DNA of 43,295 nucleotides from Octopus sinensis (taxonomy: Eukaryota), in contig NW_021834688.1 in assembly GCF_006345805.1 (NCBI RefSeq), forward strand, positions 1-43,295. The letters run 5' to 3'. The notes under the pieces were generated by a model. That model was not told the DNA's origin and ran no database searches. It was given only the letters and a program-made list of their open reading frames with translations. The translations under genes were made by a program, and so were the position numbers. Positions 1,808-37,188 of the stretch are shown here, one piece after another. Every line of letters starts with the position of its first letter. Position 1 is the stretch's first letter.

Positions 1808-3780
1808 CAGTTTTTGTGATTATCTCTGCAACTTTATATGAATAAGATAATCCAGAGACATTTTGAAATATATTTTTATTAAAGATTGACGGTAAGGCGT
1901 TTTTATTTTCAAAATTCTTTTTTAATTCTAGAAAAAAGTCTGGCTTTTTTGCAATTGAATTATGATGTTTTCGCTTTAAATGTTCAATCAAACGAGACGG
2001 TTTCATTGCCTCATTCGAAAAAATTGTACCACATTGAAGACAAAGTGGTTTATTAGGATCTTGAGGATCTTTAATAAATCCAAGAGAAATATATTCATCT
2101 TTATACATTCTGACTTTTTTTTGAACACGACCCATAAAGATAACTAGAAATCACGCTTAGAAATTTAAATAAAATATAATAAAAATATCATATTATTAAT
2201 AAATATTATTAGACTCGATTATATATCTTTATTTTTTCAAAGATTATCGACTTCTAACATAAGATTTTAATTTTTCAAATTTTAGCAATCAGCCATCGCC
2301 CCCCTACCAAAAAAAATCGCCCCTAGGGGGCGAATCGCCCGCCGTTGAGAACCACTGATCTAAAGGATCATTCTTCTTTTCCCGGATGAGACGACTTTCA
2401 TCAGGTTCCGATTCATAGTTCCATTGCTCTTCCTCTCGATTAATGTTATTATAGGAGTAGGACTCTTTTTCAAATGCTCCCGTCATTAAGTCGGTTTCGT
2501 CGAGTTTCTGATTTATATTGATATCAAGGAAAGTTATATTTTCTTCAAAACCGTCGTCCTCTTAGGACATCATTCCATGTTTATAATCGATGCACATACT
2601 TTCAAGAGTCTTCTTCATGATGATAGCTTGGATGTATGCTCTTACAGGGTACTCAATTTTCAGACCACTCTGGTATTGTTTGTAGTATTTACTGACAATG
2701 GCATCCCACGTTAATACTATGGGTACTATATTCACTTTTGCTTTGTGGATTAAAGCCAATTCACTTGCTAAGAGATCATACTTGTGGGATTTTTCGACTT
2801 CGACTTTTTTAAGAATTTGCTGCGAAGTTATTCCAATTTCGATTAGTGTAATCGTATTTTTAATTTTATCCCACACGAAAATGTCGGGCTTGTTGTTATG
2901 AACGTGTGTGGCAGTACTTATAGTAGTATCGACTCTGATCTCAACTGCTTCATTTGCAACTATAGACTGGACTGAATGGGTCTTCAATCTTTTTGACCTT
3001 TTTATTCCATACTGTCTACAGAGATGTAAGTGAATACATCTCACTACTTCATTATGCCGTCGTAAGCAATCGGTGTTTAGCATTCGCCCACACCTGGTAG
3101 CTAAATGGTCAACAGTTTTTTTCGCAGAGTTGCAATGTTTGCAATTCGTTTTTCCTGCTCCAAAGAGGAAATTGCGGTCTTGTAGTAAACAGAAGGATGC
3201 TTCTGATCTCGGAGAGATGTTTCCATATGTTAAACACGCGGAGGACTCCGTGACATCGACACTAGTATCTTCCAAACAATTAAAGAGGATTGAATGCAGA
3301 GGTTTTTTCCTGATTTCTGCAATTAGGTATTTATTCTGTAATCCTTGCAGTGCCTTCACATTGAGACTTCCATGGTCTCCAATTTTGTATTTTCGAGTGA
3401 TAAATTCTACGATTGTGGCCATATGTGTTTTCTTTGACTTCATGACCCGCAAAATTCCCGCTCTTTTCAAACAGTAATGAGACTTCTTTTCAAGGTCTCC
3501 GAAAAATTGGAGGAGCATTCTTTCGCTTTTTTGAGTTATAGATACGAGTCCTCTTTCAAGACGATTCTGGGTAGGTATAATCTTTCTTTGTTCGCCGGCT
3601 TCAGGTGAATCTTATTCTGTATTAGAATTCCTCTGATTTTTTTATCAATAACCTCAAATTCGGTTGGGTCGATATCAATAAGTCCAATATAATACAGTGA
3701 ATCCTCGCAAATTGGCCATTTTTGGTACATAGAGTTTTATGGCCAATTTGAGAAAATGGCCAATTTGAAAAAATCAATAT

Positions 3781-5335
3781 TTAAAAAATAAAATAAACAC
3801 GTTTAAATTTATTAAAATAAAATTCAATCCCTAATTCCTTTTTATTTGCTCTTTTTACATTTTCTTTGTATTTTCTTATTGCAGTAATCAGCGAAACATC
3901 ATTCTCATTTTCTGCATTACAGTAAAGTTGCCTTTCTATTTTAGTTAATGTCTTTGCAATATCTTTTCTATCGAGTGGATATATGATTTTTGTCTCTTCG
4001 TCGCTAATTTCAGACTCTTGATCCTCTTGTAAACAATTTTCGTTTATATCTTGATCTTCTGTGTTTTCGATATTTAGAAAATCTTCGCTCATTAGAGGAT
4101 CGAAAATGTCAGTTCTTTCAATTTCAGTCTCATAATGTTGAATTAATGTATTTTCGTGATTAGATTCATTTAAAATCTTAAAACAATTTTGAATAGTTTC
4201 AGTAGATACGTCATCCCAAGCCATATTAACAAACAAAATTGCATCTTTTAATGTCAATTTTTTGTATGAATTGTATACAGAAATATTTTCAGTCTCCAGC
4301 AAATCAGTTAAGTACTGTAGCTTTCTTCTCATGAAATGAGTCTTGAAGGTTTTTATAATTCCAATATCCATTGGTTGTAGTAATCCAGTAGAATTTTTAG
4401 GAAAAAATAAAATCTTAATACAATCCAAGTTTTGAGGAATAGAATGTGCAGGACAGTGGTCTATTAGCAATAAAATTTTTTTCTTTTTAATTTTAAGCTG
4501 GAGATCAAAGCTAATAATCCAATCAATAAAAATAGATCCAGTCATCCAAGCTTTCTGTGAGCTATAATATGAGACAAGACATCCATAGTCAAAATTTTTA
4601 AAACATCTAGGCATTTTTGGTTTTCCAATCATCACAGGTTTCAATTTATGACTTCCGGTCATGTTTGAACAAAGCATAATAGACACACGGTCTTTAAAAT
4701 TTTTGTATCCTTGGAATCGGTTTCTGCATACGCTTTTCGATGGAATAAGCTTGTAGTATAATGCAGTTTCATCCAAATTATAAATTAGATCAGGCTTATA
4801 CGATTTAGAAATTTCTTTAAATTCTTCACGAAAAGAATTAATGTCAACTACTTTATCTGTTCGCATCTCTCCATGTAATTTTAGCATTCTAAAACCGTGT
4901 CTCTTTTTGAATTTTGCCAGAAATCCATTAGAATTTTTAAAGTTACTAAGTTGTAGCTCTTCGGCAAAATGCGCAGCCTTACACGATATTAAGGAATCAT
5001 TCAAAAAACCACCTAAAAATTGGTTTTCAATTAATACCTTTAGACTCTATTGTATCCATCCATTCGATCAATTTTTCTTCAAGCGTAGGAAATTTTGGTT
5101 TGTGAGCAGCTTTATACGAATTTTGATAGATTTTCGAATCCCGTAAAATAGAGTCTTTATTAAGCAGTAGATTATTGATCGTCTTTCTCGAGATCGTCTT
5201 GTGGAATAAATGTGAGAATCTGTCAGCCAGAAGCTGACACGAAACACTGTCATTTTCTTCCTTGTAGTTTATAATTTGTGTTTTTTCAAGAAAAGTGAGC
5301 CGAGTATAACGTCCACGAGAAATTTTATAAGACAT
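3781..5335 (-). CDS. pogo/Tigger transposase, two exons (5335-5038, 5012-3781), 509 aa after splicing, DD30D
   Basis: N-terminal HTH and CENP-B-like HTH (FKNSNGFLAKFKKRH). Triad NLDET / LLIDHCPAH / LQPMD with 30 residues between D2 and D3. No stops or frameshifts once the 25-nt intron is removed. Confidence 0.92.
5013..5037 (-). other. 25-nt GT-AG intron in pogo transposase
   Basis: GTATTAATTGAAAACCAATTTTTAG. Removal gives WMDTIESKG|GFLNDSLISCKA. The same intron is at 13531-13555 and 36704-36728. Confidence 0.93.
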
Positions 5336-6312
5336 GTGATTAAAAAAATAGTTTATTTTCTAATTAAAAAAAATAATAATTCAAAAATTGTGGCCAATTT
5401 GCGAGGATTCACTGTAATTATAAAGAGACAATGCATGTTCATTGATGGATTTGAATAGATTCCCTGAGTTAAGTTTTGTAGTGGCCAGATTGTTAATTCT
5501 TTTCTTCATCTCATCAAAGATTGATTTTAGCACATCGCTTTTCAGTATGTTACTCATTTTATCTTCGAGCACTCCCAGGTATCGGTAGCTATCAAGTCCA
5601 TCAAGTAGTTTTGCCTCGGAAGCTAAGCACTGCACGTTAGTAGCTGACTTTTCCACATTTTTCTCTAGTCCAGGAGCCTCGAAAAAAAGATTAACATCAT
5701 TCATTATTTTTATCAACGTATCTTCTTTCTTCGAGAATATTTTTAAGTCATTCATGAAAAGTAGATGGTTTGTTGAGTATGTAAGTGATCCCTGGCCAGA
5801 GTTGTCCATATTCAGTTTTGGGTACTTCACATTTAATAATCTGCTTAACGGATCCATCAATAGCACAAAGATCTGAGGGGATAACGAGTCTCCTTGTAAG
5901 AATCCCTTTCGTAATTTAAGTTCTCCAATTTCTTTTTTGTCAAATATCAATTTAATTTTCCATCTTTTCACCAAATTTTTGATGAAATCTTTAATCCAAT
6001 TTGGAAGGCCAGAAGAGTCAAGAATCTTAAAAAGAAAGTCGTGGTCCACTGTGTCGAAAGCTTTTCTAACATCGATCCATGCAGAGGCCAAATTATTTCC
6101 GTTTTGTTGATTATTTGTTCTTAAATTCTTTCCCATTATCCGTCTGTAGAATAAATGGGGGACCAATAATGAAATCGGTCAATATAAAAAACATCTATTT
6201 GAATATTTTTGATTACTTCAAGTTCATGTTTGGTTAGGTTGAGTAAAACCATTTTTGAAATTTAGATTTGATCAATTATACTTATTTTTTTTAAAATCAC
6301 TTTTTTATTAAA

Positions 6313-6435
6313 TTGGGGGACCTGGCAAGCAGAAGGAGAAATGATCATCGGGAACGGACATGGCTTTTCCAACGAATATCAATAGCCATCTTGCGTGGGA
6401 ATTGCCATTTCATCTTATCCTCTGCTGCTAATTAA
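6313..6435 (+). mobile_element. CRE-like retrotransposon extreme 3' fragment
   Basis: LGDLASRRRNDHRERTWLFQRISIAILRGNCHFIL*, similar to the C-terminus of the CRE-like ORF at ~15880-15990. Confidence 0.75.
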
Positions 6436-6528
6436 ATTCGTGTTCAGTTTTTAAACAAAAATTTGTCTTTTTTAAAATCGGAAAACTTAGATAACCAAAA
6501 CAAAATATGTTGCGAACTATGCGCGCGA

Positions 6529-7120
6529 TCAATGTGACGTATGTTGAAAGGCAAAGATTTGAGGTGACAAGGAATCACCCTGGAGTATGCCTCTTTCCAA
6601 TTTTACCTCTCCGATTTCATTATGATTCAGAATTAGCTTAATTCTCCACTTCGTTACAAGGTTTTTCACAAAATTCACAATCCAGCAAGGGAGTCCGGAG
6701 TTTTCAAGCACCTGAATCAGAAAATCATGATATACCGAATCGAACGCTTTCTTTACATCAATCCAGGTAGAAAACAAATTATTTCCGTTTTGCTTGTAAA
6801 TGCACCGGTTAAGAATTGCTTGTTCCTTTGCCCCTTGACACATCTGCCGAGTTCCCAATTGATTATCGGCAATCAGATTATATGCCTCAATATAATCTCT
6901 CAACTTCCTGTTAACACATTTCGTTCCAAGTTTATATAAGTTAGACATACAAGTAATTGGTCTAAAATATTTGGGTCCTTGACAAATATCTTTTTTTGAG
7001 ATGAGATATGTGATTCCAGTGTAGAACCACTCATACGGTGTGTATTCACCATGAATTATCTTGACTAGTTCTTCACACAAGTGATCATGGATTGAGGTAA
7101 TTTTTTTTAAAAAGAAATTA
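6529..7120 (-). mobile_element. Second R4/Dong-like RT fragment
   Basis: FRPITCMSNLYKL, QGAKEQ, WIDVKKAFDSV, RGILQGDSLSP; truncated at both ends. Confidence 0.8.
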
Positions 7121-7122
7121 TA

Positions 7123-8040
7123 CACCCGCTAGCTCTCCAGTTTTGGAGTTGTTTAATTATTTTAAGGATGCTTTCTTTACTAAACTCTGCAAATGTATCC
7201 TCTGCCATGTCACTCTCTTGTTAATCTGTAACACACTATCACTTCTCTCATTTTTACTCCATATTTTTTTCCAATATGATAGATATTCACTGTCATTAAA
7301 CGTCAGAATTTCAATTTACTTATGACATGTAAAACCGGACAAAAATAAAAACAAATCATTTAGTAGTTAATATGTCCACCATTTGCACTGAAAATTTTGT
7401 AACATCTATTTTTCAAAGACATTACTAGTTTTTTCAATAATTCTGGTGATATATTATTCCATATTTCTGTTAATTCCTCCTTTAGTTCATTTTTGTTCTT
7501 GACTACATTTTTTGATAATTTTCTCTTCATTTCTGCCCATAGATGCTCTATAAGGTTTAGATCCGGTGATTGAGCCGGCCATTGAAGTAAAATAATGTTT
7601 TTTTTCTTTAATGTAATCTTGTACCATTTTAGATTTATGGCAAGGTGCATTATCCTCTTGTAAAATAAATGAGTCTATCCCGAATTTTTTCGCCACATTC
7701 GAATATATTATTGGATAAAATATTAATATATTTTGCGCTATTCAGGATTCCATCAATAAAAACAAGATTATCGATTTCGTTATACGAGAAACTGTCCCAG
7801 ACCATTACTTTCCACCACCGAATTTTACAGTTGGGATAATATTGCATTTTTTGTATGCAGAACCATTTTCTCTGTACACTATTTGATGCTTATTGGTATT
7901 AAAAATATCAAAAGAGCATTCATCAGTAAAAATTACCGACTTCCATGTCTCGTCGGAAATGCTTAAAAATGATTTCGTAATTTCACGTCTTGAAATTATA
8001 TTTTTGCGGATAAAAGCGATCCCGCGTATGCAAAACACAA
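7123..8040 (-). mobile_element. Degenerate Tc1-like transposon, 3' half
   Basis: VIFTDE, TVKFGGG, VMVW, LQEDNAPCH, WPAQSPDLNLIEHLW across frameshifted ORFs. A TA-CACCCG junction at 7121-7128 may be the terminus. Confidence 0.8.
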
Positions 8041-8200
8041 ATTCCTATCTTGCAAAAGACAGTATAATGCTTCGCACCCTGGACCATTGTTTCCTTTCGA
8101 TAGCCATTGCGAAGAAGTAGATAGGTCGACATTTGATTCCTCCATACATTTAAACATCATTGAGTGTGGTGAATTACAGCAGATTCGGTTAAGCAAGAAC
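8030..8200 (-). mobile_element. Third R4/Dong-like fragment
   Basis: PHSMMFKCMEESNVD...EALYCLLQDRN parallels LHSILFNCLEDTSVD...EASFCLLQDRN of the first R4 copy. Confidence 0.7.
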
Positions 8201-8379
8201 TTTCTTTGAGCGTCCTTGAGTGAGTAAATGTTCAGATTTTCTCCGCCGACAGCTGCGCGTTTAAATGCAAGAAATTCTGCGATTGATTCTTGTTTTTATT
8301 ACTTGATAGTTGACTGTTTTTTCAAACTTTTAAAAAACTGGGAGAGTATTTTTTGCTGCATTAACATTATTTTGGGGAT

Positions 8380-8540
8380 TGTTGTGATTAGATAAATACG
8401 TCATTATCCCAATCAATAGAATGGAAAAACAGCCTTTGCATGGATCAAGTTGAGGAGAATATGGTGCATCAAATTTTCGCATACTCGTATGCCTTCAAAA
8501 TATCCTTATTTTTATGGATTGGAACATTATCCATATTATA
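8380..8540 (-). mobile_element. IS630/Tc1-like DDE transposase relic
   Basis: MDNVPIHKNK ... APYSPQLDPCKGCFS read manually across a frameshift. Confidence 0.55.
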
Positions 8541-9189
8541 TAAATAAATGATTCTGCGAATTTGAGGTTTTAAATTTGATGTTTGTTATATTTGAACACA
8601 TTCTTAAAGTCCTGTCAGCAACTGTTTACGCAGACAGTAGGTATATTATTGAAACAATTGATTATGTCTTTTTTGTTTTCAACTTCTTGGAAGAATTCGT
8701 CAGCTGCTTTAATAATACACGTCTTTATATGCTTCCCGTCACTAAAAGGTTCCCACCTTTTTACGATTTTTTAACTGATAATAAAACTGGCAATAGTAGA
8801 AATTTTTGATAACTGTTTTAAATTTTTAGACGTTGACGTTAAATATCCATCATTTCTTGTAAGCTCCAGAAGGATAATTTTGCGAAAAGCACTATTTTTG
8901 GAATTAAAATGTCTTCCCAAATTGAATTTTTTGTTGTGTTTTAAAGTCTCTTGACATCTGAGACACGTAGGTAAGTTTTTAGATTGTAAAGCCCAGTATC
9001 AAAAAACAATTCAGGTGTTCGAGAAAAGATATTTAATGGAACTATACCATTTTCAGTTCAATTCTGACATTTTTATAACTATTTTGTCTTTGCGATTTCC
9101 AATATTGACAATGGGATATTCTATTTTGACATTTTTAATATTAATTTTAACAATGCTCTATTTAATAGAAAAGCAGCTATATCCATTGT

Positions 9190-9420
9190 AAAAATGGAAA
9201 TGCGTATGTTTGTAAACGTGGAGGTAGAAAGGATGCTACGATTAATCTTACTGATGATGATATTAATTTAATTTCTACAATTAAAAATTAAGAACAATCC
9301 ATCGATAACATTGAAGGAAACACAAACATTGGTAAATAATACAGTTTGTATTGTGACAGCACATAACCGACTTGGAGGCAAATTTATTACCTACAAAATG
9401 CTGCGAAGAGAACCAATTTC
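9190..9420 (+). mobile_element. Possible IS630/Tc1-like HTH relic
   Basis: KRGGRKD...NPSITLKE...YKMLRREP with stops; weak. Confidence 0.3.
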
Positions 9421-9879
9421 CAAAAATTATTTTATTTTATTAAAACACCAAGACCACGGTAAAAACCGAACAAACAACAAGTGATCCCAATGCACTCAAC
9501 CAGGGATCTTATCCTTGCTCGGTGATCTTTCCACGAGCTCATACAAGATCGCACCGGGCGGCTGGTCGCCTTTGTCGGGGCATTTGCAAACAAACTGAGC
9601 TTCAGCTTGATCAGATCTTCCAGAGGAGCTGGTCTGGAACGTTTGTTATCGTGTGAACAACGTTTGGTTAATCTGTGGGCCTTTTGTTGGACCTCTTCGA
9701 TTCACCTCCTGTTGGACCACGATAACGGCGGACCCCATGATTCGCAGAGATAGGAAATGGACGGTTCAAAGTACTGAAGGTAAATATTCGTCAATACCGG
9801 GGGGAACCGCTTTTCCATAAACCGGATAGGCTTCTGAGCACATTCATTTTTTTCTTCGCTCAAAAACCGGTGACAATTT

Positions 9880-10420
9880 ATTTTTTTTACTTATTAAGAA
9901 CTTCTACCCTTGCCATAGTAATTATAAAAAGGCATGTGCAACACAGGAAACAATGTTATTGGTCATTCTCTGCCTTCTACCACGGTCATGAGCAATTGAT
10001 CTTAGTGCGTCCAGATCCTCACCAGACTTTAAACACTTCCTCACTTTTTGGAGGTCATTGTGCAATGCGACCGGTAGCGACATCCTTGGTCGACCACAAA
10101 AGCATTTTTCTTCGAACATGAAATAATCCTCCATCGCCACGTCGGCTGGGGAAGCGAGATCCATACGCAGAATATGGCAAAACAATCTTTATCTGGCGTC
10201 AGCGATATCCCGGCTTAGAGGCCTACTTCTGCATTTGTTGTAAATTCCAGAATTCGAAATTCTGGCAGGCTAGTTCACACCAAATAACAGTCTAAGCTAT
10301 TTTCTGTGAAACGCATCAAGAGCCGTTGATTCGTCACTCGTACAGCCCCAAGTGCCGGCATTGTATAACAGCATCGACTTCACAAATACATTGTACATAC
10401 GCATCCGTTTTTTTACTTCT
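9880..10420 (-). mobile_element. RTE-like LINE C-terminal relic
   Basis: RMYNVFVKSMLLYNAGTWG...LDAFHRK*LR...RISNSGIY...RLFCHILRMD...GRPR with several stops. Confidence 0.75.
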
Positions 10421-10699
10421 TTTTTAATAAAAAATACATACTGGAAAAATGAAAACAAGTGCATTTTTACTAATTGAATAATATATTTAATGCTTGGTAG
10501 GTTTATTTGGGTTAAGATGAGAGTTTATCTTTCAGAGATTGAAATTAGATAATCCTTTTGGCCATATCTCTTTCAAATCCTCTTTTAACAGGCTGATAAT
10601 TGCATACTACAGGAAGGGAAGCTCATACTATCAGGAAAGTCATTTTGACTGCAAAATGAATTCCGTTGTTAATTAAAAAGAGTGTATATTCAAAATGCT

Positions 10700-11950
10700 T
10701 CAGTTCACAACAATAAACTAACTTTTTGATTTTACCCTGACCCACGACGTGGGTAGTAATTGGATGGAAATAAGATTCTAGAAAATCACATAAGTGTACT
10801 TATACAATAGCATGCAAATGTTCCGGAATGAGCGTCGTATTTTACTCCCAAAATATTTGGCGATTTTTGAAACGGTATCTTTACATCGTTTAAACACAGT
10901 TTCACTTACGCTTTGCTGAAGTACGCAGCGCAGTAATCGACTTGAGGTACTCAATTTGGAAAATAGTTCAAGTCTGACCTTGTATTTTTGGTATATACAT
11001 TCTTCCTGATGGTGAATACCAAACTCTGGTAAATGTAGCATTCCAACAATTATTAAAAACTAAATCTAAATCAGAAAAATCTTTTCTAGTTGGTTCATAA
11101 TGATTCAGTTCTTTCGAAGTAAAGACAGAAAAGCCCAGACTACTGGCTAAGTCTTAAAGGATAGCTCCACCCATATTAGTTGTTTCACATCTATAACTCA
11201 CATTTTCGCGTTAAGATCTCAGGCCAGGATTGTCAAGGAATTTTTTTCAAAGAACGTCACAATGACATTTGAATAACGCCTTAGAGACTTTGATTACATT
11301 CCACCTATGATCAGCCAGCCAGAAGTCGTGTGCAACTCAAGCACAATGAGGATTTGTCAGGTTTTAAAGGTTTTAGTGTCTGATCAGTTTTAATATACAT
11401 ATTGAATAGAGAATCGAAGTGCGAAGCTAGAATACTAGCTTTTTCGACGTCCTCGGTAACAGTACGATCGAGATTATCGTGGACAATGATAGTTAATACT
11501 CTACTTCTTTGCGTACGGAGTTCTTTGATTTTCTCAGGTAAAGTTGTGTTTTCCGTTTGTACTCTGAGTTCTTTTTCTATTAGAGAAAGTCGTCCAATTT
11601 CCGGACTACTCTGTTTGTGTCTCGATCCGTGTATCGGCATTAACTGGTCAGAAAAAATCAATAATTCCATTCTATAATATATCTGCAACAGTAGACCCGT
11701 CACTATGGACATTACAGAAGCTCGTTAGCGCCTATTTGGGACAAACTAAGACTCGATAAAGATACTCATGCTTTTGGGTAATAAATCATATCACAACGAT
11801 AGAAAATCGGCGTTCCGAGGACGTCCACAAACAAAAATACCTACTGTTATTTCAAAAGACATTCAACGCATTAAGATACAAAAATAGAGACGACCTTGAT
11901 ACTCTCTGGAGTATACCACGGAACCGCGCATATTGAAAAAATATGATCAA
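10700..11950 (-). mobile_element. L2/CR1-like LINE relic
   Basis: TEDVEKASILASHFDSLF linker motif and RRSFRN...LLYK RT C-terminal motif; heavily decayed. Confidence 0.5.
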
Positions 11951-12123
11951 TATGTTTCTATGTTAGTGCAAATAATATTTCTCCTGGACCGCCGTAAGAA
12001 CAATTTCTAATCTGATGAAATATTTCATTAAAAAAATTGTACCTGATTTTAAAACCCTTATGCTTCTTTGAATCCAAGGATGACTATAGGAAAAATTATT
12101 ACCAAGTCATTCAAAGTCTATCG

Positions 12124-12440
12124 AGTCAGGAACAAGAAGAACGTGTCCGTGAATTGTTAAGTCTAGTTGGCATTATTTCTGAAAGCATATCTAATCTTCC
12201 TTATGAGTTTAGTGGTGGTCAACACCAAAAAATTGGCATTGTACGATCTTTAGCTTTAAATCGCAGTTATATAGTATGTGATTAACCTATTGCATCTTTT
12301 GATGTCTCTATTTATGCACAAATCATCAATCTTCTAAAAAAACTCCAAGAAGATATTAGACTCACATATCGTTTAATTCCACATGACTAAATACTTATCG
12401 TCGGGTGTAACTGTCATGTATTTAGGAAAAATCATAAAAG
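12124..12440 (+). pseudogene. oppF: Bacterial OppF/DppF-like oligopeptide ABC ATPase fragment
   Basis: [10 protein letters not shown]...[21 protein letters not shown]...IVCD*PIASFDVSIYAQIINLLKKLQED...TY..IPHD...VMYLGKI. This gives the ABC signature, Walker B (E to stop) and H-loop in Opp/Dpp-type context. Confidence 0.85.
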
Positions 12441-12669
12441 TGAAAATAAAATTCTCCAGGGGACAAAATCTCTTATTACCTATTAAATATTTTATGTCGC
12501 GATCCAGAGCTGTGAGACGCCAAGAAAATATTAATAAATTTTAATAAAAATTACATTTCTGAACTTTTTTTGTTGATCTCTTCAGTAAATATCTGAAATT
12601 ACTAATTTTTTCTTTCACCCAAAACAACATAACATAAAATCATATGTTGAACGTAGTATTTTAATGGAT

Positions 12670-13888
12670 TTTCGTGACTAGATTTATTTAAAATCTTAAA
12701 ACAATATTGAATGGTTTCAGTAGATATGTCACCCCAACCCATATTAACAAACAAAATTGCATCTTTTAATGTCAATTTTTTGTATTAATTGTATACATAA
12801 ATATTTTCAGTCTCCAGCAAATCAGTTAAGAACTGTAGCTTTCTTCTCATGAAATGAGTCTTGAAGGTTTTTATAATTCCAATATCCATTGGTTGTAGTA
12901 ATCCAGTAGAATTTTTGGGAAAAAATAAAATCTTAATACAATCCAAGTTTTTAAGAATAGAATGTGCAGGACAGTGGTCTATTAGCAATAAAATTACCTT
13001 CTTTTCAATTTTAAGCTGGAGATCAAAGCTAATAATCCAATCAACAAAAATAGATCCAGTCATCCAAGCTTTCTGCAAGCTATAATATGAGACAAGACAT
13101 CCATAGTCAAAATTTCTAAAACATCTAGGCATTTTCGGTTTTCCGATCATCACAGGTTTCAATTTATGACTTACGGTCATGTTTGAACAAAGCATAATAG
13201 ACAGGCGGTCTTCAAAATTTTTGTATCCTTAAAATCAGTTTCTGCATACGCTTTTCGATGAAATAAGCTTGTAATATAATGCAGTTTTATCCAAATTATA
13301 AATTAGATCAGGCTTATACGATTTAGAAATTTCTTTGAATTCTTCACGAAAGGAATTAATGTCAACTTCTCTATCAGTTCGCATCTCTCCATGTAATTTT
13401 AGCATTCTAAAACCGTGTCTCTTTTTGAATTTTGCCAAAAATCCATTAGAATTTTTAAAGTTACTAAGTTGTAACTCTTTGGCAAAATGCGCAGCCTTAC
13501 ACGATATTAAGGAATCATTCAAAAAACCACCTAGAAATTAGTTTTCAATTAATACCTTTAGACTCTATTGTATCCATTCATTCGATCAATTTTTCGTCAA
13601 GCGTAGGAAATTTTGGTTTGTAAGCAGCTTTAAACGAATTTTGATAGATTTTCGGATCCCGTAAAATAAAGTCTTTATTAAGCAGTAGATTATTGATCGT
13701 CTTTCTCGAGATCGTCTGCGGAATAAATGTGAGAATCTGTAAGCCATAAGCTGACACAAAACACTGTCGTTTTCTTCCCTGTAGTTTATAATTTCTGTTT
13801 TTTCAAGAAAAGTGAACCGAGTATAACGTCCACGAGAAATTTTATAAGACATGTGATTTAAAATTGGCCAATTTGCAAGGGTTCACTG
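12670..13888 (-). mobile_element. Second, decayed copy of the same pogo family, 3'-truncated
   Basis: TIR 13865-13888 (2 mismatches vs copy 1) followed by TA. ORF pieces are nearly identical to 3781-5335 but with stops and a frameshift. The 25-nt intron is retained at 13531-13555. Confidence 0.93.
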
Positions 13889-13949
13889 TATATTTTTAAT
13901 AATTAATAAAAGTGCAGGATTTTATTTTGAATTATAAAGTTGTGGTGGT

Positions 13950-14015
13950 ATATTGGACTCATTGATATTGATCCCGGAGAGTTCGAGTAGATCGATAAGA
14001 ATATCCGACTCGTGC
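13950..14015 (+). mobile_element. Short R4/Dong-like relic abutting the CRE element
   Basis: YIGLIDIDPGEFE*IDKNIR matches YIGLIDIDPTEFEVIDKKIR of the first R4 copy. Confidence 0.7.
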
Positions 14016-16095
14016 TGGCCATCACCAAACTAATGAACAGGATGCTATCAGGGACACTGCCTGAAACAATTCGACATGTAATGTTCTCTGCCAAGCTAAT
14101 CGCATTCGACAAGAAGGGAGGGGGAGTACGCCCTATTGCTGTTGGACTGGTCTTTCGTCGTTTGGCCTCAAAGCTTGTTTGCAGAGCAATCCTGCCTACG
14201 TTGATAACACAATTACAACCAGCCCAAATTGGGGTCGGTTCACCGGGGGGTTGTGAAGCGGCAGTTCATGCTGTCCGAACATTCACTGAAAAGAACGAGG
14301 ACACTCCTTTTGTAATCGTCAAAATCGACATTAAAAACGCCTTCAACTCGATACGACGTGACACAATTCTGGAGGATTGCCTCACACATTACCCATCAGT
14401 GTACAGCTATATTAATAGTATTCATAGCTCTTATCGAAAACCATCGAGTTTGGTGCACGGCCAATATCACATCCCATTGTGTTCTGGAGTCCAACAAGGA
14501 GACCCATTGGGCCCTGCCTTGTTTAGCCTGGGAATTGCCCGTGTCACCAAATATTGTTCGACTCCTCTGAGGGTATGGTATTTGGATGATTGCACAATGG
14601 GCGGCCAGCCGAAGGATGTGCTAGATTGCCTAAAAAGTCTGATAGCCCAATTGGAATCCCTATGCGTAACCCTGAACACAATTAAGTGCGAAGTAACCAA
14701 TTTTGGATTTTCGCAGCCTAAATGGGACCTGATTCTTGAAACATTCAGAGAGATCATCCCTAAAGCCACAGAAACCAAACCAGAACAACTAGAAATACTT
14801 GGATGCCCTCTCACTGATGCAGGAATCAGTAACACTTTAATAACAAAAGAACATCAACTAAAAACAACTTTCAGACCTTTGGAGTTGCTAGACGCACATA
14901 CCTCCCTATTCCTGCTAAAAAACGCCTTGTCAGCACAGAAACTAAATTACGTTCTTCGGGGTGCACCCTGCTACCTGGAAACGCAACAGCTCGACAATAT
15001 CGATTGTCTCTTTCGGACCACAATTGAACGCATTACGAATGTGAAATTCGACGACCAAGGGTGGGACCAAGCGACCCTACCCGTTAACCTGGGCGGACTG
15101 GGAATCCCTTCTCCGAATGATCTGGCTCGCCCCGCATATCTATCCTCTTTGGACTTCAGCCAACTGCTGATCAGGATGATTCTCCAACTCCAAACTGAAT
15201 CATCTGAAATCACAGAGATGGAGCATTCGAGAGGGATGATGCCTGAGCAGAAAAATCGTTACAAGACCATCTGCGAGGATAAATACGAGAGGCTTCTGAA
15301 CCAGTCAAACCAACACAGACGTGCCTGTCTAGTGACTGGAAGATGCGAATCAAGTGGTGCTTGGATCAATGCACTCCCCGTTGATAGTGTCGGAACTCAC
15401 CTTGACGACGATACTGTCCGCATTGGCATCAGCACCAGACTTGCACTGGAGATTTGCCGGACTCACAAATGCCGGTGTGGGGCCACCGTCGATTGTTATG
15501 GACACCATGCTCTCTCTTATCGAAGAAGTGCAGGACGATTTCCAAGACACAAGCGATCAACGAAATTGTCAAGCGAGCCCTGGAGTCTGCAGGATACCCA
15601 GCCGTATTTGAACCGGTCGGGCTTGATCGAGGAGATGGAAAACGTCCTGATGGGATCACAATTTTCCCATTTGAAGAGGGGAAACCTCTAGTCTGGGACG
15701 CAACCTGTGTGGACACCCTCTGCCCGTCCAACATTGCCGGGAGCGCAGTGGACAGACTGTATGCCGCGGAAAAAACGATGAGGGCGAAGGAGAGAAAATA
15801 TGAAGCGCTACGAGATCAATTCGTGTTCTGTCCGATTGTGGTCGAGACAACTGGAGGAATAAGTGGGAAATCGCTTCGCTTCCTAAAGAAGCTTGGACGC
15901 TTAGCCACATTAAAAAGTTACGACACACGTGAGACCCGGTGGCTTCTCCAGTTGATCTCCGTTGCTATCGTGAGAGGCAACAATCAATATCAATACAGCC
16001 GTTCCGCGAGATCGCAACTTAATGTGAAATCTCGCACTGGCCAGCCACATAAGATCAAGATAGAAAAAGAGAACATGTTATTAGGAACTAACTAA
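14016..16095 (+). mobile_element. CRE-clade non-LTR retrotransposon (RT + Zn knuckle + RLE), 5'-truncated, one frameshift
   Basis: GGVRPIAVG, GGCEAAVH, DIKNAFNS, GVQQGDPLGPALF, WYLDD, GGLGI, CRCG...GHHAL, DGKRPDG...WD, VETTG, ISVAIVRGN. A 1-nt deletion at ~15550 separates ORFs 14012-15691 and 15454-16095. Confidence 0.85.
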
Positions 16096-16519
16096 TCCAA
16101 ACGAACGAATCCAAACGAACTGTCCCCCGCATCTATTTTTCTCTCGTGCTGTGGCTGATGTAGACATCCGGTTCCTCAGTGAAATCACTGATGACGGCGT
16201 CACTCGTCAATCCAGAGTGCATGTAATATGCATGGAACCTTCGGCCGGAATGATAGCAGTGAGATTCGAACCCAGAGCTTCGCGAAACTGCCAAATTCTT
16301 CAAGCACTGAGAGGCAACGCAACGTCAATTATTTTGGCAAGGTCCACTTCGGACAGATGGCTTTATTAGCTAATTAGTTTCTTTTTTAGCTGTTTTTGTT
16401 AATATATATCCGACGAATTCTTAAGAACAGTTTTGAAGATAACATTTGGAGTTTGTAATTGACAAATGATTAGTAAAAGACAGTTAGAAAAAAAGAAAGT
16501 TTGTTTAAAACTACGCAGT

Positions 16520-16723
16520 TTAGGACGCCCTCCCAGCCTCACGGATTGCGAAACAGTTGCCGCGGATTACGGCAATGAGAGGCGTTGAAGAAGCCAAAAA
16601 GACTCTCTCGAGTCGTCCGTTTTTTTGGCGATTCTTCTCCCCAAACCACGTAGGAAACAAAGCGACTTGGGGGCAAAGACCCCAGAGGTCTCAACGGCGA
16701 TGGGCGTGAAAACAAAACGGTTG
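16520..16723 (-). mobile_element. CRE-like 3' fragment
   Basis: FVFTPIAVETSGVFAPKSLCFLRGLGRRIAKKTDDSRESFWLLQRL(S)IAVIRGNCFAI...*; one frameshift. Confidence 0.8.
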
Positions 16724-16820
16724 ACAGTTTACATTTTAAGTTTGCGGTTGACATTTTAAGTTTGTAATTGTAAATTTGAAGTTCATAATAGACAAATTGA
16801 CTTGAAAATGGTATAGTAGC

Positions 16821-17235
16821 TCGATTGAGTGGGACTTTTGTATATTGGATGAAATTCATATGGAATAGATTTCCCATGTTTTGAATCTTTTAAAGTCTAA
16901 GAATATGCCTATATTCACTGGGACACCAGTTCTGAAAAATTTGGGAGATATTTGAGCCTGGTTTGACTTTCTTATGCCTGGGTTCCTTGGTACTGAGGGA
17001 GCCTTTAACCGACATTTTGTCAAGACTGTCAGAAATCAGACTGACCCCATGTTGCTCCAGCCATCAGAGGGACTGATTGACTTACAGAGTTTGCACAAGT
17101 TGGTCCTACTCTTCATTCTGTGGAGGATGAAAGAGGATGTCTTAAATGACTTCCTTCCAAGACAATCCAGGACTACCAATGCCATATGAGTCCACTTCAA
17201 ACAGTTCTCTACAACTCCCTCTCACTAAAAGTAGG
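16821..17235 (+). pseudogene. BTAF1: BTAF1/Mot1-like SNF2 ATPase fragment
   Basis: WDFCILDEIH...FTGTPV...I*AWFDFLMPGFLGTE...LHKLVLLFILWRMKEDVLND...KTIQDYQCHMSPLQ. It has two stops and a frameshift and matches recalled Mot1/BTAF1 motifs (DEGH, GTPIQN, FDFLMPGFLGTE, LRRMKEDVL, IIQDYYC). Confidence 0.85.
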
Positions 17236-17531
17236 GCCGTAATGTTTGTTTATATTACGCCTCAACTTTCCGCAATTAAAAGGGAAGATAGTCAAGATCA
17301 GTATCCCAGGTAAATTAAATACATGTGTGGACTTGATCATACGTTGACACAAACTGTTCAAGCCCAACTCCTAAACCAGTCTCTAAAACAACCACCGGAA
17401 AAATAGGGTTCAACAGTTCCGGAACTGCAACTCGACCGATTTAACACAAAGACATATCCATTTTTAAAAACTAAAATGGGCCATCGAAAGTGTACTCTAA
17501 TCTAACACTAAGAAATTTTATTTACTCAAAT

Positions 17532-18730
17532 TCACAAATTACTGAATTTAGTCTCCGTCACCACTTTTATAATTTTCCTTACGTCAGAAATATCCTCTAT
17601 AACGTATGAAGGAACAAGTCTTCTGGCCAATCCAAGGACGGTCCTCACTCTTTTAAACCTCTCGAAATAATTAGTCTCATTCAATGGCCACTCTTTGATT
17701 GTACTCATAAGTAAGAGGTAGCATTTTTCTTCGGAATACTCCTCTATCTCCTGAATTAGCGCATCATGGTAGTACTCCTCTGCAACCTCCACCAATTCTC
17801 TTCGATCGTAATCATTCAAGTATTTCCTAGAGAATCAAAAACCCTAAATAACTTGGAATTCTTAGGCGTGGGGGAGAGTCTGGAATAAATGCCAAACAAT
17901 TCTTCTGCACTCCCCAACTCGAAAAGAACGTCTAATAGCAGTCTAACTCCCCTAGAACAATAGAACTAACCATTACTTGCGTAGATATATGTGGAACTTG
18001 CCTCGTTCCACATTATCAGAGTCAATCATCCACACATTCTATCATTAAGGTCTAGTCATTACTGCAAATAAATTTTCCTTCGTGTTCAAAGGCGGGAGAA
18101 TAGGCTTGTGGTCTAAAATATATAAGAAAGAAATAACATTTGATAAGGAATATCACAACAACCCGATGCACGTATTTTCTGTATGAGGAATGAAATGAAA
18201 GGAGAACTAATATCATACAGACAACAATGTGTGGCATAATCAGAACAATCTACTTATGTGAGCAGAATTTGGTCACCACGCAAGTCTTCCATTACGTAAG
18301 ATATCATGAGAATATACTCAATTATTACTTTGTTCTTTGGATCCAGAAATAGGCACTAAATATTTACTCATTTCAAACTGTAATAAATGATTTTTTGGCC
18401 TGGTTGAGTTGACCAAGTGTTGTGGCCGTCATTCCCAGCTTAAGTTGAGTATAGAAACACTTCGGATCGATGTCAGAGGCCTAATAGATGCTCAAATATG
18501 TATACTTTTTTTAAATATTTAAAAGCAGGTTGAAAGTTTTTAAGGTGGAAATAGTAATTGCCAATAAAATTAAGAGTGTAGTATTCTACACTACCAATAG
18601 ACAAAGAACGTTTCCCAGACAAGAGTTGATTTAGGACAGCACGTTGGTTTCTAAGGAGTTGGCTAAGTTCATGCTCCTTTTCTGAAATGGACAGGGCCAT
18701 TTGAATTAGCTGCATTTCTGGAATCGACAT
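17532..18730 (-). pseudogene. CABIN1: Internally deleted CABIN1 paralog: N-terminal TPR exons fused at 18087/18088 to the last exons
   Basis: ATG at 18730. Introns 18481-18505, 18356-18378, 18250-18276 and 18113-18137 (23-27 nt) give a TPR region that aligns without gaps to the recalled CABIN1 N-terminus. 17532-18087 is identical to 40705-41260. Confidence 0.75.
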
Positions 18731-19934: not shown

Positions 19935-21340
19935 TCAATCAATCAATCAATCAACAACTTTATTTAGGTAACAACGGATAGTATGTGGGGTAATAATTAA
20001 TGAAACGGTAAGGCTTGCTCACCGACTTCTTCCGCGAAACAAAAAAGAAAGGAGGAACCCCAACCTCTCAGTATAGAATTACCTTTGCAGGTAAGTCCCA
20101 GTGACTGTTGACCAGAATGTGTAGTTTTTGATGCTTTTTTCAACGATTTCCCCCACCGTAGGCGTTTTAGCCTCGAGCCATGGGGGAATCGGGCATTCCA
20201 GGCTTTGGGAGTAGGCGATTTTTAACGCCAGTCTCCGAGTATTCTCAAACTTCCCGATAATGGGACTCCTCTTTCTAGAGAAGTACCATGCCTCTTTTCC
20301 AAATATAAGTCCTGGTAAGATCACCGTGTTAAAAACATAAAGGAAAGTGTCTGGTTCCAGATTTAACTTTCTTAAGCAAAACAGTGCGTTTGTTGCTTTC
20401 TTTTTTCGAATTTTTGCATTTTCAGTGTATTTACCATTTTCTTCAATTTGCAATCTCAGGTATTTTATTGAATGTTGTCGTGGTATGTTAGTAATCAGAC
20501 ATGGTGAATTTTTAAGATTTCTACTTTCTGTGATTCTCAACAGGGCAGACTTCTTACGTGCGACAGCCAGCATGTTACTTCTGCACCAATGTTAGACCTC
20601 TTCCATATATGACAGCATTCGTTGTTCAGATAAGGCAGGTTTCGGTGAAACATCGAGGATGACCACATCATCAGCATATATTAGAATTTCCGTCCGTACA
20701 TTGTTTGGGGAAGGTAGATTACTCATGACAATGTTAAATAACAGAGGACTGAGTACTGATCCCTGGGGGACACCTCTTTTTAATTTTAGCTCATCCGAGT
20801 CGTGGTTCAGTAAGCTTACCACTGATCGTCTGTCGCGGAGGAAGTCCTGTAACCATAGAAACAGTTCTCTATCTATCTGACACTTCACCAGATGTCTCAG
20901 AAGGCCAAAATGCCATACACTGTCGAATGCCTTCGAAATGTCAAGACAGACCATCGTCAGAGATTCCTTGGTATCCAGAGCCTTCATAATTAACGAATTT
21001 ACCGTATAATGACAGTCCCCACAAGAGCGATTTCTGCGGAAACCCCACTGCACATTTTTTAGAATATTTTTGCTCTCCACATGTTCCGAGAGTCTTCCCA
21101 GCAATATCCTTTCCATGATTCGGCTGATGGTAGGAATCAGGCTTATTGGCCTATAGCTTGTTGGCAAGTAGCGAGGTTTTCCTGGCTTCAGTATCATCCT
21201 AACCTCCGTTAGTTTCCAGGAGGAGGGGACGTATCCCAAATGAAGACTACAGGAGAAAAGACATCTCAAATATTCATAAAGTTCCCTCGGTGCTTCTTTG
21301 AACAATCGCAATGTTATCTTGTCTCTTCCTGGGGCATTAT
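19935..21340 (-). mobile_element. Jockey/I-group LINE, 5'-truncated, with (TTGA)n tail
   Basis: YRPISLI, QWGFR, LDISKAFDSVWH, GVPQGSVLSP, IYADD. An in-frame TAA is at 20592-20594. On the minus strand AATAAA is followed by ~5 TTGA units (19935-19954). Confidence 0.88.
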
Positions 21341-23149: not shown

Positions 23150-26124
23150 AGAAAAAAATGGAAAGGAAAAATTTTATTTTAAAATAAAAGGCTGTTAGTG
23201 AGGGTATAATTAAGACCTTCGGCATTTCTGCCTTTTCAGTCCCGCACACACGCTCGCCTCTCAGCCGCAAACTAAGACTTACCGTCTTACCTGCCACCCA
23301 GACATTATCTTTTCTAAGACCTCAGGGAGGCCTTTGAGGGACAATTCCTGGGTGTCCGTGAGCTCCACTCGCCATCCTAAGCCATGGGCTAGCCGGATGG
23401 CTCGTCTTCTGACTTTCTTGAGCGCGTCAACGTACTTCTCTCGGTCCTCACAGAAGTGCCAGGCATGTACGCCATAGGTCAACACGGGTAACACCATGGC
23501 GTTAAACACACGTAGCCAAGCACCTCTCCGCAGCCGGAAAGCACGCAACGCGCCTAATCGCTGCATTGCACGCATTTTCGTACGTGCAATGTGATCATCA
23601 AACTTACCGGACGGCTTAAAGAGCACGCCCAAATAAGTCATCCGATCAACTGCGGCAATTGCTGACCCGTTCAGCAATAACCTAGGAGCGTAATTAGTGT
23701 AACCCCTCGTCCTTTTACAGACTTTGAGAACACTGCACTTATCCGCACGCATCTTTAGACCCCTACTCCCACACCAGTTTACAAGTCCATCCACAGCAAC
23801 CTGTAGCCTACGACACGCACACTCAGGTTTCATCGAGTGATCCCAGAGGATGATGTCGTCTGCATAAATTACCATTTCAGTACGAGCATTGACTGGCATG
23901 GGCGCAGATGCCATAAAGACATTAAAAAGCGTGGGACTCAGCACAGAGCCCTGAGGGACCCCGCGAAGGACTGTTCTGACTTTAGAAAAGACCCCCTGAT
24001 GCCGCACGACCTGTCCGCGAGATTCAAGGAACCCCGACAGCCAGCGCCTTAGACACGGAAAAACCCCACACGTGGCGAGGGAGCTCCGGAGGCCGTCGTG
24101 CCACACCGAGTCGAAGGCCTTTTCGATGTCAAGACTAACTAGCATACCGCATTCCTTCTTCTGGAGGGCGCACTTCATCTCAGAAGACACCTTCCATAAG
24201 CAGTCTCCACACGAACGACCCTCCCTGAAGCCCCATTGGAACTCAGGGAGGGCATCAACCACCGTCAGCTCCTCCAGGAGCCTTCGGTGCATGATCCTTT
24301 CTAAAATTTTAGATACAGCGGGAAGCAAGGAAATAGGTCTGTATCCCCCGGGGACATCATGAGGCATCCTGGGTTTTCCGATAAGGATTACCTCAGCCAC
24401 TTTCTATCTAGAGGGAATCATCCCAAGTCGCAAGCTCCCGCTAAACAAGACCTGTAAGGCGGTGATCAACAACGGCGGGGCCTTCTTGAAGAGGGCCATA
24501 GGGATCCGATCCAGACCCGCCGCGGTGTTCTTACTTCGGGAGATCGCTGCCAGAATCTCCGCTTCGGAAATATCGCCTGCATCGTTCCTTGATATGCCCA
24601 GCTGGCAGCGCTTGTCCCACGACAATATCTGCTGGACAGTATCAAAGGACGATGTCTCCACGAACTGGCTTCCGTCAGTTCCAGAGATGTTATCGAGGTG
24701 GGTCGAAAATATTTCAGCCACCTCAACCGGGTCCGAAACGAGGGTTCCATCAGAGCGTTTAAGGCGCACTGAATTTGCTACCCCTCTCCCCGACAGGCTC
24801 TTCAACTGTTTCCAGAAGTCCGGGAAGCGGGCGTCTACGCGTCTGCAGGCTCGCTCCCACCGTGAACTTTCAAGTTCGCGGATTTCTCTTTTGATCTCCC
24901 TCTGAAGCCGGCTAATCCAGCCACGAAACCAAACACGGTTTTCCTCGTAAACGCATTTGTCCCGTAGTCTGGATAGCCGGCGCTTAAACTTAATTTTATT
25001 TAAGACCCGGTATGGCAGCGTGGAATGTGACTTACCCTGCACTGAGTTCTGTTTGAAATTATCTCGCATATAATCAGTCAGGGCAGCATTGATTCCATTA
25101 TCTAACGCCTCCAACTCACGTATATTGGCACAGGTATTCCCCACCAGAAGTGAGGGCAACCTGCTGGCCATGAACCTCTCCAGGTTGGCCCAAGAACCCG
25201 ACCGGAGGTCGAAGTATCCCGGAACCCTTTGAGAAACTGGCTCGCGGAGTTCGTGCAATAGAGGCAGATGGTCGCTTCCAATATCGGGCAATAAAATTGT
25301 TTTACTAACCCAATTTAGCATTCCAGGACTGACCAGAGCAAGCCCTAGCCAGTCCAGTCCGCCTCGCGAATCGATGTGGTTTGGCTCACTTGAAGTCCGG
25401 ATTTCCAGCCCGAGGTCTTCAACCAGCGTCTTCAGAGCCAAACCATGCGCGTTGGTTACCCTGAAACCAAGCTCTATGTGCTTGGCATTCAGGTCTCCAA
25501 CAACCATCGCCTTCGGATGCTTTCCAAAGAACTCCCGTACGTGCCAGGAACACGCCGTAAAGTTCTTCGAATACATCGCCCCTAGGAAAAATGTAAGGTT
25601 ACCTATACGAATCCTTACTTGAAAGAATTCGCATAGGCTACAAGAACATAAACCTGAACTTTGCAATGCGAGGTACGGCTTGTAGAAGAGGCTAGTTCCC
25701 GTGCCACATATTGATCCCTGTTTCCAGGGTATGTGACAACAGTTGTAGCCATCAACTACGTACGGACCCCCCTTTACCTTCGTTTCGTTAACCACCAGAA
25801 TGTCCGCACTCGTGGTGGTTAACATCCTCTGAACGGCGTCTCCTTTACCGGACAAGGAGCGCGCGTTCACCGATATAATGTTGAGCATCATATCGGTTCC
25901 TCACCAAGGATCTTCTTGGCCTCAGCCATGTTGCAATGTAGCATATCTGCTACACTGCACTTCGTCGCCCTACATAATTTTAGTAGGCGCACACACAACT
26001 CCACCGCAGGACTAACACTGTCCTGGGGAGCACGCTCGCCAGGGGGGGAGTGCGGTGGCATTTCCACGTATGGAGGACGCCTTTTCCCCCCTAGGTTTTG
26101 CTGGGCGGTATCACCTGTAGCCCT
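23150..26124 (-). mobile_element. Jockey/I-group LINE: ORF1 tail + ORF2 (APE endonuclease + RT), 5' end lost at the satellite
   Basis: APE motifs NARS, NETK, VGDLNAKH, GSDHLPL. RT motifs YRPISLL, LDIEKAFDSVWH, GVPQGSVLSP, IYADD. A single TGG-to-TAG nonsense lies at 24404-24406. The ORF1 stop overlaps the ORF2 ATG (ATGA, 25888-25891). Confidence 0.9.
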
Positions 26125-35296: not shown

Positions 35297-35613
35297 AGTC
35301 AGGAACAAGAAGAACGTGTCCGTGAATTGTTAAGTCTAGTTGGCATTATTTCTGAAAGCATATCTAATCTTCCTTATGAGTTTAGTGGTGGTCAACACCA
35401 AAAAATTGGCATTGTACGATCTTTAGCTTTAAATCGCAGTTATATAGTATGTGATTAACCTATTGCATCTTTTGATGTCTCTATTTATGCACAAATCATC
35501 AATCTTCTAAAAAAACTCCAAGAAGATATTAGACTCACATATCGTTTAATTCCACATGACTAAATACTTATCGTCGGGTGTAACTGTCATGTATTTAGGA
35601 AAAATCATAAAAG
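35297..35613 (+). pseudogene. oppF: Duplicate of bacterial OppF-like fragment
   Basis: Same translation as 12124-12440. Confidence 0.85.
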
Positions 35614-35842
35614 TGAAAATAAAATTCTCCAGGGGACAAAATCTCTTATTACCTATTAAATATTTTATGTCGCGATCCAGAGCTGTGAGACGCCAAGAAA
35701 ATATTAATAAATTTTAATAAAAATTACATTTCTGAACTTTTTTTGTTGATCTCTTCAGTAAATATCTGAAATTACTAATTTTTTCTTTCACCCAAAACAA
35801 CATAACATAAAATCATATGTTGAACGTAGTATTTTAATGGAT

Positions 35843-37061: not shown

Positions 37062-37188
37062 TATATTTTTAATAATTAATAAAAGTGCAGGATTTTATTT
37101 TGAATTATAAAGTTGTGGTGGTATATTGGACTCATTGATATTGATCCCGGAGAGTTCGAGTAGATCGATAAGAATATCCGACTCGTGC

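Follow-up and report, generated by a model that had tools for sequence, protein, structure and literature searches.

A 43,295-nt stretch of Octopus sinensis contig NW_021834688.1 (positions 1-43,295, hereafter the window, along which all positions are counted) carries a complete pogo-family DNA transposon whose transposase gene is split by a 25-nt GT...AG segment. We are confident, short of certainty, that this element is a young, probably autonomous pogo transposon from an animal, inferred to be a dicyemid, whose introns are ultrashort, and that excision of the segment as an intron yields a single protein of 509 amino acids. The proposal was first made by a sequence-only reading, which placed the GT...AG segment at 5037-5013 and noted that its removal gives an unbroken 509-residue DD30D transposase; all of its coordinates and numbers are correct, and its limits, 3695-5414, coincide with the exact ends of the element, marked by perfect 24-nt terminal inverted repeats. 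The anatomy of the element is as follows.

3693-3694: left TA target-site duplication, from alignment of filled and empty sites.
3695-5414, minus strand: complete pogo-family DNA transposon, subfamily A, 1720 bp from inverted repeat to inverted repeat (Pfam DDE_1, E = 1.5e-43, plus HTH_Tnp_Tc5).
3695-3718, plus strand: 3' terminal inverted repeat, the identical 24 nt, exactly matching the opposite end.
3740-3766, minus strand: two subterminal AAATTGGCCA repeats, presumed transposase binding sites, from motif counts.
3781-5012, minus strand: exon 2, ending in a TAA stop (Pfam, hhalign, dN/dS).
4366-4368, minus strand: catalytic D315, GAT in QPMD, 30 residues past D284; invariant column in the alignment with 22 relatives.
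4459-4461, minus strand: catalytic D284, GAC in LIDHC; invariant column in the same alignment.
4771-4773, minus strand: catalytic D180, GAT in NLDET; invariant column in the same alignment.
5013-5037, minus strand (read 5037-5013): predicted 25-nt GT...AG intron GTATTAATTGAAAACCAATTTTTAG, from the excision frame test and comparison of copies.
5038-5335, minus strand: exon 1, 298 nt from the ATG at 5335 with a phase-1 end, encoding residues 1-99 and the first base of codon 100 (open reading frame, weak CENP-B_N match, hhalign, dN/dS).
5391-5414, minus strand: 5' terminal inverted repeat CAGTGAATCCTCGCAAATTGGCCA, 24 nt, exactly matching the opposite end.
5415-5416: right TA target-site duplication, from alignment of filled and empty sites.

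Exon 1 encodes the first helix-turn-helix and the beginning of the second, and exon 2 contributes the remaining Tc5-type helix-turn-helix, the DDE_1 catalytic core, an acidic tail and a C-terminal PIP-like (PCNA-interacting-protein-like) box. The D180/D284/D315 triad has DD30D spacing, inside the DD29-56D range published for the last catalytic spacing of the pogo superfamily (PMC7386202, PMC7325037). Together with the CENP-B_N and HTH_Tnp_Tc5 domains, the terminal inverted repeats and the TA duplication, this DDE_1 triad places the element in the pogo superfamily (IS630-Tc1-mariner). The 10-mer AAATTGGCCA also lies within each inverted repeat and occurs nine times in the window, against 0.13 expected; an extra occurrence at 19257 was set aside as an unrelated chance match within coding-like sequence. 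The C-terminal box (3784-3830, minus strand) reads ELGIEFYF in subfamily A and QMGIQFYF in subfamily B, the profile consensus of the relatives being Q..I...F. We take it to resemble the motif by which Drosophila pogo transposase, likewise at its C-terminus, is reported to bind PCNA.

On the minus strand, the transposase gene is divided between two open reading frames (ORFs): ORF1 (5335-5027), encoding 102 amino acids and closed by a TGA at 5029-5027, and ORF2 (5004-3781), encoding 407 amino acids in a different frame, with its first ATG at about residue 39. Exact excision of the 25 nt gives ...GAG TCT AAA G/GT GGT TTT TTG... and an open frame of 509 codons, whereas retention in subfamily A leads to an in-frame TGA after three codons (G-I-N-stop). 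Among GT..AG pairs spaced 10-120 nt apart near the junction, four yield a long ORF (25, 73, 79 and 100 nt), and the 25-nt pair is the only one below 60 nt. Pfam matches HTH_Tnp_Tc5 in ORF2 at profile positions 23-64 only, the distal two thirds, and gives ORF1 a weak CENP-B_N match. AT-rich DNA not infrequently offers a GT..AG pair bridging two frames; the significance of this one lies in comparative tests.

Comparison with uninterrupted relatives identifies the 25-nt block as extra sequence. The two pieces were searched separately in all database and profile searches, and the spliced conceptual translation was used only for alignment, the ratio of nonsynonymous to synonymous change (dN/dS) and the tree. 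Against a profile of 22 natural full-length relatives, exon 1 matches columns 2-93 (hhalign probability 98.3%) and exon 2 matches from column 95 on (probability 100%), with the split glycine codon at column 94 and neither gap nor overlap between the two matches. When the conceptual spliced product is aligned with 41 relatives of 480-600 amino acids, 37 are gapless within four residues of the junction; two have a 2-residue insertion and two a 1-residue deletion. The 8-residue insert expected from read-through is present in none of these 41 full-length sequences. Among named relatives the closest comes from the microsporidian Dictyocoela muelleri; it is a single contiguous ORF of 1533 nt and reads TCA AAA G/GG GCA, a proto-splice site, at the position of the intron; a search for terminal inverted repeats around it found nothing clear.

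The junction falls within the DNA-binding domain. HTH_Tnp_Tc5 spans residues 77-138 of the Dictyocoela muelleri relative, and the junction, at its residue 95, lies inside this domain. The profile of relatives matches the CENP-B DNA-binding domain (PDB 1HLV) over positions 5-131 (E = 4.6e-28); a phmmer search of PDB with ORF2 alone returned no match, so that the profile was needed to reach 1HLV. As judged from these alignments, a whole CENP-B-type DNA-binding domain is predicted to exist only across the junction, neither ORF being complete alone.

The closest proteins in the protein search are RefSeq models labelled Octopus sinensis, which form clusters of 14 models on 14 contigs of GCA_006345805.1. 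From this assembly we retrieved eleven loci (L001-L011, contigs VCDQ01...). Besides the window copy, young subfamily A copies occur on five other contigs (L002, L003, L004, L005 and L008; 98-99.6% identical), and all five carry the 25-nt intron of the window, which in L002 reads 24 nt through a 1-nt homopolymer deletion. Such deletions are frequent in L002, L008 and L003 (in the last also at 10857 and 11069 in a neighboring glycyl-tRNA synthetase (GlyRS) gene), as in long-read consensus error, and break ORFs. The window itself holds two occurrences of an older copy.

12661-13888, minus strand: old truncated subfamily A copy, 95% identity, with stops and frameshifts; intron at 13531-13555.
35834-37061, minus strand: the same old copy, duplicated with a 13.3-kb segment; intron at 36704-36728.

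The old-copy intron GTATTAATTGAAAACTAATTTCTAG has two internal substitutions and intact GT and AG, as the sequence-only reading had observed for a decayed second copy. That description stands; the weight placed on it does not. Both occurrences lie inside a 99.98%-identical duplication and therefore count as one independent copy, in which survival of GT/AG proves little and is expected by chance (~0.2 changes in 4 nt at 5% divergence).

The informative comparison is with subfamily B (L001, L006, L007 and L009), which has 71% nucleotide identity to subfamily A. Its intron, GTAAT(T)TGTACTAATTTATGATTAAG, occupies the identical site and phase and has the consensus GTAATTTGTACTAATTTATGATTAAG, 26 nt long in L006, L007 and L009 and 25 nt in L001. 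Only 8 of 21 interior positions are identical between the two subfamilies, so the interiors are effectively unrelated. The sequence-only reading had proposed aligning all copies, and the outcome favors it: GT and AG are kept in all 11 copies that retain the region, covering two subfamilies and 10 contigs, and position and phase are kept between the subfamilies. The intact B copy L006 comprises a 298-nt exon 1, a 26-nt intron and a 418-amino-acid exon 2. When the window copy is compared with L006, synonymous change has reached saturation (pS = 0.69); dN/dS comes to 0.14 overall, with 0.17 for exon 1 and 0.07 for the catalytic core. These values indicate that both exons have been under purifying selection throughout the long A-B divergence, during which the block kept only its GT, AG, place and phase.

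In subfamily B both reading frames are stopped inside the block, and retention leads to a stop after G-N-L-Y. Since the intron lengths of A and B differ, the relative frames of their ORFs differ as well, and exact excision alone makes both genes whole. The sequence-only reading had held that lengths failing to restore the frame would count against the intron; this criterion was mistaken, since the exon phases alone count once the intron is spliced out, and subfamily B with its 26 nt is equally whole. The exon junctions predicted after excision are GAGTCTAAAG/GTGGTTTTTTG in subfamily A and GAGTCTAAAG/GTGGCTTTCTT in subfamily B. Upstream of the AG, the candidate branch-point sequence reads TACTAAT in B and AACTAAT in the old A copy, against AACCAAT in the young A copies. 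L010 and L011 (3274-4905) hold the same internally deleted B copy, which has lost positions 301-536 including the intron and is either a non-autonomous derivative or one locus assembled twice.

Two A copies have longer 5' ends than the window copy.

L002, 10172-10290, and L003, 8375-8490: longer 5' ends with five AAATTGGCCA repeats (compare 5330-5414 of the window).

The window copy is without ~99 bp of this 5' subterminal region, between the first and the last repeat, and still transposed.

Recent movement is recorded in the window by a duplicated 13.3-kb segment (3111-18087 versus 28004-41260). The two segments are ~23.2 kb apart and 99.98% identical, with 2 mismatches in 13.2 kb, and the pogo element is the only structural difference between them. 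The second segment preserves the unoccupied target.

28587-28588: empty paralogous target site, a single TA with identical flanks.

The empty site reads ...AATATAATA/ATTATAAAG..., a clean TA with no footprint, and the retrotransposon reverse transcriptase (RT) ORF that the element interrupts stays unbroken there (27977-29338). TA also flanks copies L001, L002 and L003. The empty site shows that the element inserted after a very recent duplication, and these features, read from the sequence, indicate recent mobility. Recent insertion and near-identical copies imply that a working transposase existed very recently and hence that the two exons had to be joined. The duplicated segment also carries a long interspersed nuclear element (LINE), the old pogo copy and a GC-rich RT ORF; sequence beyond the segment differs, so it is not part of a simple tandem array.

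The introns point to the probable host. The GlyRS gene beside L003, on an 854-kb contig, has at least 13 GT..AG introns when three frames are read against the conserved protein, with lengths of 24, 23, 27, 25, 53, 25 or 34 (by donor), 26, 26, 25, 24, 29, 30 and 26-29 nt. The window and its sister contigs share three repeat families (the pogo element, a ~330-bp repeat and a ~540-bp repeat) and therefore belong to the same genome. The 23-29-nt host introns invoked by the sequence-only reading thus have a real counterpart, in the 23-30-nt introns of the GlyRS gene on a sister contig sharing these repeats. Its ultrashort-intron host also holds up, with the difference that the host now inferred is not the organism on the contig label. 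Octopus introns are long, and dicyemids inhabit cephalopod renal sacs.

Dicyemids and myxobolid myxozoans are the only animals for which such ultrashort introns have been reported (PMC13644364). Dicyemid introns measure 26.2 +/- 1.9 nt (PMC2222250) with a median of 27 nt (PMC6543705), and Dicyema japonicum, collected from O. sinensis, has a LINE-rich genome with 36.7% GC and 49% repeats (PMC6736024). Dicyemid splice signals are reduced to 'GTa' and 'AG', with weakly conserved A residues in the introns (PMC13644364); the introns of subfamilies A and B both begin with GTA. On the basis of intron size, sample ecology and these published figures, the window is almost certainly dicyemid DNA inside an octopus assembly. 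Three other hosts were considered and dropped. A ciliate with reassigned stops does not agree with 509 codons and GlyRS exons free of in-frame TAA/TAG, nor with introns that hold TAA/TAG as stops; a microsporidian is a misfit with a 13-intron GlyRS gene; and Trichomonas, among the hosts first considered, was likewise abandoned.

With the dicyemid comparison in place, the segment is strongly supported, by sequence characters, as a U2-type spliceosomal intron of the dicyemid ultrashort class. It has GT and AG ends, its removal gives a colinear product, its boundaries and phase are kept while the interior drifts, and its length lies in the host range.

Several considerations temper these conclusions. 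The case for splicing is built from sequence comparison. The search of the protein collection with exon 1 returned no match, and the matches to exon 2 include no full-length spliced product spanning the junction. Subfamily A has no evident branch point (AACCAAT). Many 1-nt homopolymer errors in the assembly make the "intact" status of any single copy provisional, and the window copy may be mobilized in trans because of the missing ~99 bp of subterminal 5' region. The dicyemid identity is drawn from intron size, ecology and published figures rather than from a phylogenetic marker, Rfam and tRNA scans of the window having found nothing that could provide an rRNA or tRNA marker.

These reservations bear on four rival explanations. 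The block might be a disabling insertion, all copies being pseudogenes of one broken master and the GT/AG coincidental, a view that gains from the purely comparative nature of the evidence, from the abundance of GT..AG pairs in AT-rich DNA and from frameshifts in several copies. We nevertheless consider it very unlikely: the exons evolve under purifying selection (dN/dS 0.17 and 0.07) at synonymous saturation while the block, though unrelated in its interior, stays at one site and in one phase; both subfamilies include a copy whose frame is open after removal of the block; one copy inserted after the 99.98%-identical duplication; and a gene of the host, on a sister contig, has introns of this very size. 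That the gene is expressed unspliced, through a ribosomal frameshift or read-through across the 25 nt or as two separate proteins, has only a very slight chance of being correct. The ORF2 frame is indeed open across all 25 nt in subfamily A, where a single shift could fuse the frames and add ~8 residues, but in subfamily B both frames are stopped inside the segment and the offset is 26 rather than 25 nt, so no one shift serves both. Moreover, no relative has the 8-residue insert, the junction cuts the second helix-turn-helix and leaves neither ORF with a whole DNA-binding domain, and ORF2 starts late. Exact excision, by serving both subfamilies alone, removes frameshift, read-through and broken-gene explanations together.

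The window could also be genuine octopus DNA into which the element crossed from a parasite, its 25-nt intron unspliceable and the copy dead on arrival. Both the deposited record and its annotation name Octopus sinensis, and the window holds only repeats and no intron-bearing host gene; against this, three repeat families are shared with contigs of which one bears the 13-intron GlyRS gene with 23-30-nt introns, and an element present at one of two 99.98%-identical paralogous sites and absent from the other speaks for mobility in the present genome. We give this scenario very little credence. Least credible, with a practically negligible probability, is an assembly or sequencing artefact behind the ORF split, since the block, despite the many 1-nt homopolymer indels of the assembly, is no homopolymer error and recurs in 11 copies on 10 contigs.

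Under the favored reading of a spliced dicyemid transposon, the host spliceosome would remove the 25-nt phase-1 intron within the CENP-B-type bipartite DNA-binding domain. The spliced mRNA would encode a 509-residue protein with two helix-turn-helix motifs, a DD30D core, an acidic tail and a PIP-like C-terminus. This transposase would presumably bind the AAATTGGCCA repeats in and beside the inverted ends, excise the element and reinsert it at TA. Unspliced RNA would give a 102-residue fragment with the first DNA-binding motif only, for which a role as regulator is speculation. An extended version of the model, which we think improbable, makes the intron both a switch and a lock: the element would be autonomous only in dicyemid-like hosts and inert in octopus or other animals because a 25-nt intron needs an adapted spliceosome, the 102-residue fragment left by incomplete splicing would compete for AAATTGGCCA and damp transposition, and the intron gain would be a dated one in an animal lineage known rather for shrinking its introns. 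Intron retention damps transposition of the P element, an analogue for such a switch.

A maximum-likelihood tree makes sisters of subfamilies A and B with 100/100 support and places them inside a well-supported clade whose remaining ORFs are uninterrupted. The tree contains search hits only, without reference members of named families (Tigger, pogoR, Passer, Lemi, Mover and Fot); the relatives are called 'Tigger-derived' by their sources. The nearest relatives being uninterrupted ORFs, the intron would have arisen on the A+B stem, and a single gain there at a proto-splice site is the simplest history. The alternative "acquired or shrank" offered by the sequence-only reading is thereby settled in part: gain on the lineage stem agrees with the tree, and the intron may have been born tiny or have shrunk later. 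For a tandem duplication of the neighboring exon as the source of the intron, identity to the downstream exon is 11/25 by eye, which is background at saturated sites.

The nearest precedent comes from the element that founded the superfamily, Drosophila melanogaster pogo: splicing of a 55-nt intron, minimal in size for that host, joins its two ORFs (Tudor et al. 1992, as cited in bioRxiv 10.1101/2023.05.27.542554). Drosophila pogo shares with the dicyemid element cut-and-paste transposition, terminal inverted repeats and a two-ORF transposase joined by splicing of a short, host-minimal intron, and differs in intron length (55 nt there, 25-26 nt here). What is new here is another splice-joined pogo, in a host of tiny introns. 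The proteins are distant, Drosophila pogo not being among the 80 matches of the exon 2 protein search. Two large pogo surveys do not use the word 'intron' (PMC7386202, PMC7325037), one of them noting elements with 'one or two ORFs'.

The Tigger-like pogo elements of the microsporidians Dictyocoela muelleri and Cucumispora dikerogammari and their metagenome relatives belong to the same clade, with ~50% amino acid identity in the core, the same domain order and nearly the same length (510 versus 509 amino acids). Unlike the dicyemid elements, they have an uninterrupted transposase ORF, reading AAAG/GG where the intron lies. Dicyemid host-gene introns (PMC2222250, PMC6543705, PMC6736024, PMC13644364) resemble the pogo intron in length (25-26 nt), 5' GTA, bare 3' AG, AT-rich interior and an in-frame stop on retention. 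The pogo intron differs from them in lying within a mobile element and in having no counterpart in the relatives of that element, which marks it as a gain and not a legacy of an ancestral animal gene. CENP-B and Abp1 (PDB 1HLV, 1IUF), domesticated pogo transposases, share the N-terminal bipartite helix-turn-helix domain; unlike these immobile host genes, which lack a working triad, the element keeps its DD30D core, inverted repeats, TA duplication and signs of recent movement.

Gene annotation has failed on this family in the way the sequence-only reading anticipated, as none of the 13 RefSeq models read for it includes exon 1. Such elements will be missed or truncated by transposon surveys that expect one uninterrupted ORF and by gene predictors that impose a minimum intron length. 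Four RefSeq models, XP_029656933.1 on the window and three others (P0081, P0083 and P0084), splice out an in-frame 102-nt GT..AG stretch at 4177-4278 (minus strand) that encodes 34 residues kept in all relatives (VYNSYKK...QNCFK); this removal is probably a predictor artefact, the other option being alternative splicing.

Not only the window contig but at least 11 more, some of them 0.25-1.3 Mb long, stand under Octopus sinensis in deposition and RefSeq annotation; they come from the organism of the 23-30-nt introns, most probably a dicyemid parasite of the kidney. The 14 XP_0296... 'tigger-derived 6-like' and 'jerky-like' proteins and the chimeric 'glycine--tRNA ligase, mitochondrial 1-like' are not octopus proteins, and the apparently dicyemid contigs in the O. 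sinensis reference affect any comparative use of its proteome. The mechanism is as expected once the host is known, and the case is unusually clean. With one intron in two diverged versions (25 and 26 nt) and a known correct product, the element is a compact natural reporter of ultrashort-intron splicing, and it documents intron gain at a proto-splice site within a lineage of extreme intron reduction. The family appears active and is useful toward dicyemid genetic tools.

The remainder of the window contains further repeats. A tandem array at 26151-28004 consists of 24.8 copies of a 75-nt unit with 83% matches, has far more C than G on the plus strand and shows a GC skew of -0.38 to -0.51. The G+C-richer ~330-bp repeat lies at 15987-16309 and 39160-39482, and a 94.5%-identical copy interrupts the L003 pogo element (8941-9264); by eye it looked derived from a tRNA, an origin for which ARAGORN and Rfam gave no support. 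Non-LTR (non-long-terminal-repeat) retrotransposon ORFs fall into two classes.

14012-15691, 23279-25891 and 37185-38864: GC-rich (45-54%) endonuclease/RT ORFs.
27977-29338 and 20592-21311: AT-rich (~30-37%) RT ORFs.

At 25891-23279, the EEP and RT ORFs are parted only by a stop or frame change near 24400.

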